Part shown: one piece after another, positions 9,193-12,100 of the stretch
How positions within the stretch are numbered: the stretch's first letter is position 1
Layout of the letters: every line of letters begins with the position of its first letter
Origin: Bugula neritina
Lineage: Eukaryota > Animalia > Bryozoa
Assembly (NCBI GenBank): GCA_964035545.1
Contig: OZ037771.1
Location: forward strand, 14,135,133-14,199,132
Length of the DNA stretch: 64,000 nucleotides
Direction: 5' to 3'
The notes under the pieces: generated by a model
The model's database searches: none
Seen by the model: only the letters and a program-made list of their open reading frames with translations
What the model was told of the DNA's origin: nothing
Position numbers and translations under genes: made by a program

Positions 9193-12100
9193 ATGTACTG
9201 GTGGTACATAGCTGTAAGTATAATTTATATTTTTCACTCAAAGTCAATTCATTACTTTTTTACATTTTGAAATTTTAAGCATTAAGTATATTGTGAATAT
9301 CACAATAATAATATATGTTTTAGATTCTGCTGGTAGTCTGTGGACAGACAACTGCTGATAGGAATAATGAAACAAGGTAAGTGTAGTCTACATGGTTATG
9401 TTGATATATACATATGAGCTGTCTTTACACATAGTTTTATACGCAAGATATGTAATCAATAATGTTGCTATGGTTACGTGCCTCAATTTACTCTATATAT
9501 AATTATATTAGCATTAATTATTATATATTCATTATAGAGCTGCTATTTGTGTCAATTAATTTAGAATTGATTAAATATAAAAATATAGTTTAATTTTCCA
9601 TAGAATATTTACTGAATAAATTGTGAAATAGTTTTTATATGCAAATTGGAGCTTTTTGTGTTTAATAAATTATAGCGCTGTTTAAGTATTGAAAACAGAA
9701 AATAGAGTTTTCATAAAACAATATACTGTTTTATCATGATAAATACTACACAAAACACATGCTTACATTTTTATAGAATTTAATATGCTAGAGAATACAG
9801 CTAAAACTATTTTCTTCATCTCAAGTATATAATGTACAAAGTCAAGAAAATGCATTGTTTTGGTTAACAACACTTTGTTGGCTACTTTCAATTGCTATAT
9901 AAGTGGATGAAATAGAACTTTGCATGTTTATGAATGAGATAGTCCAGTAATTTGTTTACAATGCATAGGAGTGTTTTATTATAACAGTAAAGTTGATGAT
10001 CAACACATATCTAATTCACTAAATTCACTTTTATTCCATCAGCAAATAAAACTGATATTCATAATAATAAATTGAAATATTATGAATCAAATGCAGTAAT
10101 GTGATTGATCATCCACATATAATATGTTTTATAATACTTTTACAAGTTGTATACTATTATATGTTAAAACTATACTATAATATGTTTTATATTACTTTTA
10201 CAAGTTAATGTTAGGTTACAGCTGAATACTACCATATGTTACAACTATATTACGTATATACCACTGTGAGCCTATAATTACTATATAACTGTTGCAGCCC
10301 ATAGTTTCTTAAGTTGATCAGCAGCAGCAGCAAATACAACTATTAGTTAATAGATTTAAATACTCATAAATAATTATCTTCTTGTTTATTACAGCATATC
10401 CTTCAAGAAAGCAGAACTGTTCCTTACAACTTCTTACACCACCAATCATATGGAACTTGATAAATATAAGAATGATGGAAGCCTCCTCCTCGGTACTAGC
10501 TCTGGTCTACTAACCACTGATGGGCAGACAACTTCAACTCTTGTGTCATTTTATGTAACAGGTTTCACACAACTCAATACGACTCATGTTGTTTTGGTAG
10601 ACCGTGGCAGTCACTGTATTAAACTGTTGACCAGAGAAGATAATAACATCAAAGTTATGGCAGGATCATGTGGTACTAGAGGCTACAAAAATGGAAGAGT
10701 AGGGGTGGGACAGTTGAGGTACCCTTGGGGAATACAGATAGATATTAGGAACCCAGGGAAGTTATTAGTAACTGATGACAATAATAATGCTATAAGGTCT
10801 GTTGATATGAGGACAGGAGAACTGAGTAGAGTAATAAATACTGGGTTCAGTTATCCTAAAGGATTTCAGTGGGCTGGCAGACAGTTGCTAGTAGCTAATT
10901 TGTACCAGTGCATATCACAAGTGAGCTGGTCCAGCAATGGAAGAGTTAGTAACCTTCTATTGGCTGGTTCAACAAGTTATGGTGATGTGTTTGGCTCGTT
11001 TGACATTGCTAGATTTTACAATCCTCGTGATATTGAAGAAGTGACAGACAATCTGTACCTGGTTGCTGACCATGGAAATAAAAAACTCAAGCTAATGGAT
11101 ATGAAGAAGAGGATAGTCGGTCCAGTCTGCTTTAAAGGAGAAGATCCGTGTACAGAGAGTAGCTTGCTTCCTTATGGACCATATGCTTTGCTGAATGTGG
11201 ATGGAGCAATCTATGTTGGAATGACCCGGAATATCTATAAGTTGAGTGGTGAGTGAAATCTATACATATTATGTAATAAATGTATGCAGGTGTGTAGAGT
11301 TCAGTATATATTAGGCTATTTATATAAATGCATATAACATAATACATATATACTATATATATAGCATAACATGTTATATTATATGTTGTAGTATATAGTA
11401 TATATAATATATAAATATACAATAACCGTGTAGAATATACACATATATACTGTCCATATCTTACTATAATGCTATAATTAATATAGTGTATGTATAGTGT
11501 ACGTGTATAATAAACATCAATATCAATACTATAATATAACTATATTATTGTCATAATGTGCCTGGGGATTGCTAATGAAGCATGAAACTAATTATAGTAG
11601 CACAATAAAACAGCATCCAATTAAATTGCTTTTTTTTTGATAACATAATTGCTAAGTATTGTACATATAATAATTTAGGCACTCTTTTATTTGCTGTATA
11701 TATATGTATACAGTACATATATATATATATAGTTTGTCTTTTGTTCTCCCTATTAATTTTGCACATTATGGTGGGCATGCAAGAGTAGCTCAGTTTGAGG
11801 GTATTTCTATTAAATATTTTTCTTAACGGATGCTTTGAGTGAAACACTTTGCCTATTATGTTGAGGAATTGTCTTCCTATGTTGGTTGCAGCATGTTTGC
11901 TGCAGGGTGGATTGAACCATATAATGTTCCTCTTTCTAAAAAAAGGTATATATATATATGTATATATATATATATATATGTATATATATATATATATATA
12001 TATATATATATATATATATATATATATATATATATATATATATATATATATATATATATATATATACCTTTTTTTTCTAGTATCAAGATTTATAAAAAGG

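Follow-up and report, generated by a model that had tools for sequence, protein, structure and literature searches.

A lineage-specific family of predicted secreted NHL propellers with a hypervariable face in the bryozoan Bugula neritina

The NHL propellers encoded in tandem arrays in the genome of the bryozoan Bugula neritina carry, on the evidence of their coding sequences, one to four positions under strong diversifying selection in every D-A and B-C loop; these loops, twelve in all, make up one face of the fold. Purifying selection acts on the strands and the opposite face, on four cysteines and on a C-terminal tail. The window analysed here, a stretch of 64,000 nt, contains three copies of the NHL exon, at 1–594 (copy 1, cut at the window start), 10395–11248 (copy 2) and 53996–54849 (copy 3), and about 90 or more copies are present in the genome as a whole. 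The genes are probably members of a lineage-specific secreted family with a variable head and a constant tail, in which the top face of the propeller would bind diverse extracellular ligands, such as molecules on microbial, symbiont or allogeneic surfaces. The tail is predicted to exit the propeller on the face opposite the variable one and may serve all members alike, for instance by oligomerising or by docking to a cell or effector. The family as a whole would constitute a germline-encoded humoral recognition repertoire. It is a candidate for an immune or allorecognition role. A more specific proposal, to which we give somewhat less than an even chance, is that of a bryozoan humoral repertoire of approximately 100 secreted NHL propellers with paratope-like faces, whose gene content and alleles would differ between individuals and whose targets would be microbes, the heritable symbiont or foreign colonies.

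Gene structure, leader and tail

The coordinates assigned to the copy 2 propeller by a sequence-only reading of the window, 10395–11248, proved exact, as they delimit a single splice-bounded exon of 854 nt with an acceptor (ttacag) ending at 10394, a donor (GTGAGT) from 11249 and a reading frame open from 10396. That reading requires correction in two respects, the first being that the NHL exon makes up just the head of a gene with seven exons. All exons of the three copies lie on the forward strand. The coding part of copy 2 exon 1 (9193–9213) consists of the ATG plus six codons (MYWWYIA) and is followed by a GTAAGT donor; 10 paralogs conserve this block, a break in conservation and indel pattern follows directly 3′ of the donor, and the approximately 100 nt 5′ of the exon, either 5′ UTR or promoter, are also conserved among paralogs. 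Exon 2 (9324–9376) is a micro-exon of 53 nt, bounded by AG and GTAAGT, that encodes the rest of the predicted signal peptide and the predicted cleavage region. It ends in phase 2, is compatible in phase with both exon 1 and the NHL exon, represents the best-conserved block of the intron alignment (0.94–0.97) and was detected by tblastn in eight further paralogs. Exon 3 encodes a complete six-bladed NHL propeller of 284 codons plus split codons, as identified by Pfam, AlphaFold2 (AF2) and fold and profile matches. The C-terminal domain begins in exon 5 (12386–12526) and continues through exon 6 (12825–13023) to exon 7 (13322–13433), which includes the stop codon and gives a protein end without a hydrophobic tail. 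Exon 4 is missing from copy 2 due to a deletion between about 11732 and 12054, adjoining a TA microsatellite, and the frame is kept because the lost exon measures 210 nt.

Copy 1 is represented by the 3′ 594 nt of its NHL exon (1–594; the whole exon, together with exons 1 and 2, is found in locus L002) and by a four-exon tail at 1972–3663, comprising exon 4 (1972–2181), which encodes a Cys-bounded module of 70 codons, exon 5 (2588–2728), exon 6 (3052–3251) and exon 7 (3552–3663). Exon 6 of this copy has one additional A in an A-run near 3143–3149, which breaks the phase into exon 7. In copy 3, the coding part of exon 1 (45359–45379) and the signal-peptide micro-exon 2 (53373–53425) are separated by an intron carrying an insertion of about 7.9 kb (45456–53336) that is not present in copy 2 and that contains, on the minus strand at 49708–50598, a LINE-type endonuclease ORF (Pfam Exo_endo_phos, 25.6 bits). 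These exons are followed by the propeller exon (53996–54849) and a tail at 55455–57103, in which exon 4 (55455–55664), exon 5 (56066–56206), exon 6 (56499–56697) and exon 7 (56992–57103) are all in phase. Every splice site of copies 2 and 3 is canonical and every phase consistent. Tail peculiarities, namely the frameshift of copy 1 and the missing exon 4 of copy 2, are seen in two of the three copies.

The leader, a hydrophobic stretch of 14 residues in which V-x-G precedes the predicted cut, is shared between two micro-exons that are conserved in 10 paralogs; it was judged a signal peptide by eye, from the hydrophobic core and V-x-G, and a basic n-region is absent. When a signal peptide within a single exon was sought, neither strict nor relaxed criteria gave a match, because the leader is divided between two micro-exons, and it was found by conservation instead. 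Two other kinds of leader candidate were rejected. The apparent leader at 8647–8690, which resembles that of P0004, a 520-aa protein of a relative encoded on a 1.9-kb Logan contig, has no donor and its frame is broken in copy 3, and the leader-like N-termini of gene calls such as P0018, P0030 and P0131 are translated polypyrimidine tracts of the intron. In P0004 itself, a single unbroken frame covers signal peptide, propeller and tail, and the exon set of the family is shared even by paralogs with propeller identities of only about 50%. A membrane anchor was not found, the genes ending at 13433 and 57103 in a hydrophilic, Cys-containing tail without a hydrophobic segment. The claim of secretion made in the sequence-only reading is in this way upheld, by a conserved two-exon predicted signal peptide upstream and by the lack of both a membrane anchor and a RING domain.

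These features bear directly on the possibility that the exons are the C-terminal propellers of genes for intracellular TRIM-NHL ubiquitin ligases. Weak matches (22–29% identity) to a cluster on contig C8 would fit such an origin, but the six frames of the 64-kb window hold no RING or B-box Cys/His pattern, the directly upstream exons encode a conserved hydrophobic leader, the gene runs on downstream into a Cys-containing tail, and P0004 begins with a leader rather than a RING. We consider this origin to be extremely improbable.

The C-terminal domain of approximately 150 residues is encoded by exons 5–7 and is present in all three copies. Its dN/dS is 0.40, a value summed over separate exons, which were searched one at a time and not as a spliced protein, and exon 6 has at least 47 genomic copies, none of them with a stop. 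Searches for relatives of the domain gave no Pfam match, no usable Atlas match and no homolog in a word-indexed protein search, and a single-sequence AF2 model of P0004 reached a pLDDT of only 34. Between the propeller and tail exons, each gene carries zero to two small Cys-bounded modules. The Cys...Cys-x-Y-x-V-x-V pattern of exon 4 resembles that of HYR; identification as an HYR domain was not confirmed, with no Pfam HYR match at E up to 10 among 11 members. A profile search of the PDB likewise gave no match to exon 4, and an Ig-like Big_14 match is weak (E 0.011) and below the cutoff.

Selection on the variable face of the propeller

Exon 3 of copy 2 matches Pfam NHL (PF01436) at 24.4 bits against a cutoff of 20, and copy 3 (19.6 bits) and copy 1 (12.4 bits) fall under this cutoff. 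The AF2 model of the copy 2 propeller (pLDDT 97.1, pTM 0.93) has 24 strands, arranged in the model as six blades of four antiparallel strands with closure of the propeller by the N-terminal strand, as deduced from strand order. Foldseek and profile matches include NHLRC2, SOQ1, TRIM71, Brat and PknD, with a Foldseek probability of 1.00 to NHL propellers, and a profile constructed from 52 relatives matches NHLRC2, SOQ1 and TRIM71 at E 5e-26 to 1e-15.

Comparison of 38 sequences defined 32 hypervariable positions, equal to 11% of the exon, with up to 14 different residues at a single site. Numbered from the codon at 10396 as residue 1, these top-face positions are 15, 17, 35, 36, 53, 55, 70, 71, 95, 108, 109, 111, 128, 129 and 131 in the first half of the exon and 152, 153, 155, 169–171, 195, 208, 209, 211, 226, 227, 260, 261, 263, 277 and 278 in the second. 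Judged by composition, the variable positions are mostly Tyr, Ser, Asn, Arg, His and Trp and are paratope-like, as in antibodies. Enrichment reaches 6.9-fold for Tyr, 7.7-fold for His, 4.2-fold for Trp and 3.1-fold for Arg, so that the variable surface described earlier as rich in Tyr, Arg, His and Phe holds for the first three residues but not for Phe (only 1.4-fold). The motifs that had been listed as hypervariable all recur among the maximum likelihood-selected or highest-entropy sites, and the Cys pairs that had been called invariant, C74/C92 and C245/C252, are retained by 90% or more of the 38 sequences.

Over 286 codons, copies 2 and 3 differ by 43 amino-acid changes, with 11 codons showing silent changes only and 13 showing changes of 2–3 nt, in close agreement with an earlier hand count of about 41 and about 11 over 267 codons. 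The NG86 dN/dS of this pair is 0.88, and pairwise values for the whole exon extend from 0.64 to 1.37. The second correction to the sequence-only reading is that, since whole-exon dN/dS is about 0.9, the case for selection depends on heterogeneity among sites and not on the raw count. Just over half of the changes between copies 2 and 3 (22/43) fall at the 32 hypervariable positions (hypergeometric p 8e-14, a figure that is partly circular, as both copies are among the 38 defining sequences).

Codon site models fitted to 11 close paralogs gave an M0 omega of 0.73 and strongly favoured a class of selected codons, with log-likelihoods of -4384.80 for M1a and -4301.15 for M2a (2dlnL 167; omega2 6.9 at 8.6% of codons), and of -4401.86 for M7, -4305.83 for M8 (2dlnL 192) and -4384.87 for M8a. 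Some 56% of codons are placed at omega 0.15 and about 9% near omega 7. Mosaic intron divergences point to sequence exchange between copies, and the paralog tree is poorly resolved (bootstrap 5–87). The likelihood ratios are inflated because of this exchange; the segment-wise and structure-partitioned tests hold nonetheless. Division of the exon into thirds, with a separate tree for each, yielded 2dlnL of 70, 31 and 88, and a partition based on structure alone gave dN/dS of 1.2–1.8 for top-loop codons, 0.5 for strands and 0.3–1.2 for bottom loops. Intron divergence is 0.04–0.12, approximately equal to dS, and top-loop dN is 0.16. Among the 18 sites with P>0.95, 15 are located in top loops (Fisher p 5e-6), and the remaining three fall within the first two residues of the strand that comes after such a loop, the top and bottom faces being assigned by strand order in the AF2 model and not by measured geometry. 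The diversifying selection and top-face location postulated from the sequence are borne out: roughly 9% of codons have omega of about 7, a result robust to segment-specific trees, and the changes are far from even in their spread over the fold.

Neutral decay, in which the copies would be recent duplicates under relaxed constraint or pseudogenes with dN/dS near 1, could account for the range of pairwise whole-exon values, for an exon nucleotide identity (about 91%) equal to that of the flanks, for the frameshift in exon 6 of copy 1 and for the stops in the neighbouring paralog L025. It does not agree with the uneven distribution of omega between the conserved majority of codons and the selected minority, with the low dN/dS of strands and tail, or with the state of the genes: 73 of 78 best genomic matches are without a stop, copies 2 and 3 have kept all their splice sites intact, and no indel disturbs the propeller frame in the 11 close paralogs. 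This explanation is already largely refuted, and we regard it as very improbable.

A further alternative is that the proteins are secreted enzymes of PAL, SMP-30 or lyase type, or Tyr/His-rich matrix proteins of cuticle or adhesive, in which variation would tune substrate range or material properties rather than recognise non-self. Foldseek also returns lactonase-like and lyase propellers, and Tyr and His are common in marine adhesives. The enzyme structures, however, match as a generic fold only (12–14% identity), Pfam at E up to 1 gives NHL and neither SGL nor strictosidine-synthase, and the nearest solved relatives by sequence are the binding domains of NHLRC2, SOQ1 and TRIM71. Omega of about 7 at scattered loop positions over approximately 90 genes would also be unusual for enzymes, and Tyr and His are limited to about 30 positions, the globular domain being otherwise ordinary. 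An enzymatic or structural function is held to be improbable.

Family evolution and differences between samples

The family is lineage-specific, and in its tandem arrays genes are duplicated and lost, acquire small lesions and exchange sequence with one another. Its variation beyond this assembly was viewed in two samples labelled 'symbiont metagenome', from the same or a sibling lineage, which contain 27 ORFs of the subfamily. All but one of these (26/27) remain at or below 87% amino-acid identity to every one of this assembly's 11 close paralogs, and three contigs that were checked have flank identities of at most 90% to any locus of the assembly. One contig, L031, is allele-like to copy 3, with 97.8% nucleotide identity; selected sites account for three of its 10 amino-acid changes.

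Such differences would also fit recognition with a purpose other than immunity, such as colony allorecognition, gamete or larval recognition, or the policing of a vertically inherited symbiont, and Bugula neritina is colonial and carries a heritable symbiont. Against this, the metagenome may derive from a sibling species, so that the difference in repertoire need not be within-species polymorphism, and known invertebrate allorecognition proteins are membrane-bound, in contrast to the anchorless tail found here. A non-immune purpose is for these proteins rather unlikely.

Comparison with known recognition systems

The scaffolds on which diversified recognition is known to be built include Ig, LRR, fibrinogen, C1q and B30.2, and we found no report of a secreted NHL propeller in this capacity. 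The earlier remark that no characterised family of this architecture was recognised is supported, Pfam, protein and literature searches having turned up none; the literature searches revealed neither an NHL-based diversified recognition family nor anything on NHL families in Bryozoa. To our knowledge, Bryozoa are without any described receptor for immunity or for self/non-self discrimination. With about 30 defined hypervariable positions on a rigid, confidently modelled scaffold and a constant tail, heads, tails, ligands and individuals become directly testable, and protein engineers may find in the propeller, with its twelve variable loops, a natural scaffold for binding.

TRIM-NHL proteins (TRIM71/LIN-41, Brat, TRIM2/3) share the six-bladed NHL propeller with the family described here, and their ligand binding takes place on the top face of the propeller (PMC9634614). 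They differ in possessing a RING and a B-box together with a coiled coil, none of which occurs in the secreted NHL family, and in being cytosolic, whereas the bryozoan proteins, with a predicted signal peptide, disulfide-type Cys pairs and an orphan C-terminal domain, would be extracellular. The lumenal NHL domains of NHLRC2 and plant SOQ1 are the best profile and fold matches (E 1e-23 to 5e-26, TM about 0.73), but these are single-copy, conserved proteins fused to thioredoxin-like domains, with no hypervariable face and no multigene array. The allorecognition loci of the Hydractinia Alr and Botryllus fuhc/BHF type are marked by extreme allelic polymorphism within a species, and their proteins are transmembrane, unlike those of the NHL family, which ends without a hydrophobic segment.

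In organisation, the NHL family comes close to secreted diversified families such as snail FREPs, amphioxus and Ciona VCBPs, sea-urchin Sp185/333 and the C1q and lectin expansions of bivalves, which likewise combine a signal peptide, tandem arrays, a variable head joined to a conserved part and diversifying selection on the binding surface, in the NHL family a putative one. Their scaffolds are Ig, fibrinogen, chitin-binding or C1q instead of NHL, and immune induction and binding have been shown for them. In its pattern of variation, the family resembles lamprey VLRs and those fungal NLRs whose WD40 or ANK repeats are hypervariable (HET-E/NWD), in which positive selection also acts at a few positions per repeat on one face of a solenoid or propeller and exchange between repeats or copies is likewise the generator of diversity. 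The fungal NLRs are intracellular and VLRs are somatically assembled, in contrast to the NHL family, in which each gene would represent a fixed germline variant that is secreted.

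Gene structure and a predicted secreted-type product

The three paralogous open frames of the window, all on the plus strand (1-602 in copy 1, cut by the window start; 10450-11256 in copy 2; 54051-54857 in copy 3), lie in AT-rich eukaryotic DNA of about 30% G+C with TA microsatellites. In copy 2, the frame remains open 5' of the first Met as far as a conserved ttacag acceptor (10389-10394), which is identical in all 11 close paralogs of the assembly, and ends at a GTGAGT donor immediately 5' of the apparent stop; the interval singled out by the sequence-only reading, 10395-11248, is therefore exactly one exon. 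Among the representative proteins retrieved by search were numerous ORFs of about 290 residues and a single 520-residue protein (P0004, from a 1.9-kb Logan contig of a relative), whose one frame runs through a hydrophobic leader, then the propeller, then another 200 residues. The tail of P0004 aligns to small conserved exons 3' of every propeller exon in the window, and two upstream exons were revealed by conservation across ten paralogs. The coding end of exon 1 comprises ATG and six codons (MYWWYIA) followed by a GTAAGT donor, and exon 2 is a 53-nt micro-exon of 17 codons and two bases; read together, they specify a hydrophobic leader of 14 residues in which V-x-G precedes the likely cleavage point (by inspection). 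The earlier description of the product as secreted thus corresponds to a predicted signal peptide split over two conserved exons, and the protein has no hydrophobic segment at its C-terminus. Among the representatives, the propeller query scored highest against four metagenome proteins of 3,600-5,400 aa with 23-36 NHL-like stretches each (P0001, P0002, P0005, and P0007), which may be bacterial multi-propeller proteins or gene calls fused across tandem arrays.

Every splice site is canonical and every phase consistent in copy 2 (exons 9193-9213, 9324-9376, 10395-11248, 12386-12526, 12825-13023, and 13322-13433, plus strand) and in copy 3 (45359-45379, 53373-53425, 53996-54849, 55455-55664, 56066-56206, 56499-56697, and 56992-57103, plus strand). 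Intron 1 of copy 3 carries an insertion of about 7.9 kb (45456-53336), absent from copy 2. Within it lie a long TA-rich microsatellite (51689-52153) and, on the minus strand, an endonuclease ORF of LINE type (49708-50598; Pfam Exo_endo_phos). Exon 4 (210 nt), which specifies a module of about 52 residues bounded by Cys, can be lost without disturbing the reading frame. Copy 2 lacks this exon and the surrounding intron (11732-12054, versus 1088-2254 in copy 1 and 55342-55736 in copy 3), the region having been replaced beside a TA microsatellite, and the module is considered optional in the family because it is absent from several other paralogs and doubled in one. The A-run at 3143-3149 in exon 6 of copy 1 is one A too long by comparison with copies 2 and 3 and with P0004; the last 23 codons of the exon are shifted as a result, and it no longer joins exon 7 in phase. 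The cause is either a genuine lesion or an assembly error in the homopolymer. Pooled dN/dS over the tail exons is 0.40; in searches and folds that used unjoined exons, they gave no Pfam family, no usable Atlas match, and no other homolog in a word-indexed protein search.

At the far end of the window (62001-64000), G+C rises to 55%, versus about 30% for the genome, and overlapping Arg/Pro-rich ORFs occur at 62800-63204 (minus) and 62915-63340 (plus), neither of which matches Pfam. The plus-strand ORF ends in a retroelement-protease-like D-S-G motif; the segment may derive from a retroelement, from foreign DNA, or from misassembly.

Diversifying selection on the propeller exon

Between copies 2 and 3, the initial estimate of about 41 amino-acid and 11 silent changes over 267 codons became, when counted over 286 codons, 43 codons with amino-acid differences and 11 with silent-only change, 13 codons having two or three nucleotide changes. 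This pair has a whole-exon pairwise dN/dS (NG86) of 0.88; the six closest copies span 0.64-1.37. The duplication takes in flanks and introns as well (88-92% identity), and intron divergence among the three copies (0.04-0.12) is similar to dS (0.09-0.10), so the raw count of changes is, on its own, compatible with neutrality and the case rests on their location.

Codon site models were fitted to the 11 paralogs (284 codons) with a home-made Goldman-Yang likelihood program, validated at M0, where its likelihood (-4524.78) equals the IQ-TREE GY+F3X4 value on the same tree. Models allowing positive selection were strongly preferred (M1a -4384.80 versus M2a -4301.15, 2dlnL 167; M7 -4401.86 versus M8 -4305.83, 2dlnL 192; M8a -4384.87 versus M8, 2dlnL 158), with M2a placing omega at 0.15 for 56% of codons, 1 for 36%, and 6.9 for 8.6%. 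The paralog tree is weakly resolved (bootstrap 5-87) and the closest pair among copies 1-3 varies along the gene (e.g., introns 2739-3031, 56217-56478, and 12537-12804): divergence in intron 3 is 0.057 between copies 1 and 2 and 0.10 between copies 1 and 3, and in intron 5 it is 0.039 between copies 1 and 3 and 0.12 between copies 2 and 3. The poor resolution and these mosaic divergences, which point to gene conversion or to unequal exchange, indicate that the copies exchange sequence. Since exchange can inflate site-model tests, M1a and M2a were refitted separately to the three thirds of the exon, each on a tree of its own, giving 2dlnL values of 70, 31, and 88. The diversifying selection proposed from the sequence, with about 9% of codons of the whole exon at omega near 7, therefore holds in each third, and the hypervariable motifs originally listed match the 18 sites with a naive empirical Bayes posterior above 0.95. 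Pooling the paralogs with 27 ORFs drawn independently from two JGI metagenome samples (38 sequences) gave a concordant result: 20 of the 30 highest-entropy positions belong to the 25 sites for which P(omega>1) exceeds 0.5. A single position can take as many as 14 different residues, and 60 positions do not vary.

Placement of variable sites on the predicted fold

AlphaFold2, supplied with an alignment of 52 relatives, predicted 24 strands (pLDDT 97.1, pTM 0.93), and Foldseek together with a sequence profile placed the fold among NHL propellers (NHLRC2, SOQ1, TRIM71, Thin, Brat, PknD, and teneurin). Faces were assigned by strand order, as successive propeller loops alternate between two faces; the 12 loops with selected or high-entropy sites are all odd-to-even in the strand list. 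The V/A-D-ending motif is taken here to be strand B, which it forms in other NHL and YWTD repeats, so that the variable loops would be the D-A and B-C loops and both termini would lie in blade 6, on the opposite face. In a partition defined solely by this topology, dN/dS is 1.2-1.8 in top loops, 0.5-0.6 in strands, and 0.3-1.2 in bottom loops. Fifteen of the 18 selected sites are in top loops (Fisher p 5e-6), and the other three lie within the first two residues of a strand directly after one, so that selected sites map, by strand order, to the top (D-A/B-C) face. The anticipated richness of this surface in Tyr, His, and Arg was also found (6.9-, 7.7-, and 3.1-fold enrichment at variable positions), with Trp enriched 4.2-fold and Leu, Val, and Ile depleted; the invariant Cys pairs are the conserved Cys74/92 and Cys245/252.

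A tandem family and its possible role

A search of the 216-Mb assembly, in which the window spans G000:C7:14135133-14199132, gave 135 matches, of which 92 reach E 1e-25 or lower. They form clusters on C7 (13.4-14.7 Mb) and on C2 (24-33 Mb), and outlying matches occur elsewhere. At least 47 genomic copies of tail exon 6 occur in the same places, and paralogs with propellers only about 50% identical keep the same set of tail exons. Gene death within the array is shown by a broken close-subfamily member (L025, G000:C7:13708206-13711709): its propeller exon falls into two overlapping matches, of which the first has two TAG stops. Neutral decay was rejected on site-model heterogeneity, the constraint on strands and tail, and the absence of stops from 73 of the 78 best genome matches. 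Repeat blocks of 1.2-3 kb lie 3' of each gene copy (4000-7600, 13900-19700, and 57400-59200), with families D6, D10-D12, D15, and D18 common to the three units and some inverted.

The 27 metagenome ORFs (JGI samples 3300003318 and 3300002729) bear on differences between individuals or lineages. One of them lies on contig L031, which matches copy 3 with 97.8% identity across 1.4 kb. The differences number 12 among 514 noncoding sites and 15 among 853 exon sites; those in the exon yield 10 amino-acid changes, three at selected sites. The other 26 ORFs have at most 87% protein identity to any of the 11 close assembly paralogs, and for the contigs of three of them no assembly locus exceeded 90% nucleotide identity, flanks included. 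This difference in repertoire reflects either within-species gene-content variation or rapid turnover between sibling species.

The large tandem family evolves by birth, death, and exchange between copies. Its members have a predicted secreted-type leader (by inspection) and a rigid propeller of which, as strand topology places the faces, the top alone would be hypervariable and paratope-like, and a constrained tail would exit from the opposite face. These features are most economically read as a germline repertoire of soluble proteins for recognition, in which a variable head would be joined to a constant tail; an enzymatic or structural role is less consistent with the pattern. We infer only that such proteins may bind ligands in the service of immunity, symbiont control, or allorecognition. 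Literature searches returned no work on bryozoan NHL families, nor any in which a secreted NHL protein is under diversifying selection. Membership of the TRIM group was rejected, as no RING or B-box pattern occurs in any frame of the 64-kb window, and the family is thus distinct from TRIM-NHL proteins, the crystal structures of which display the same arrangement of loops and termini, with the top surface as the binding face (PMC9634614).
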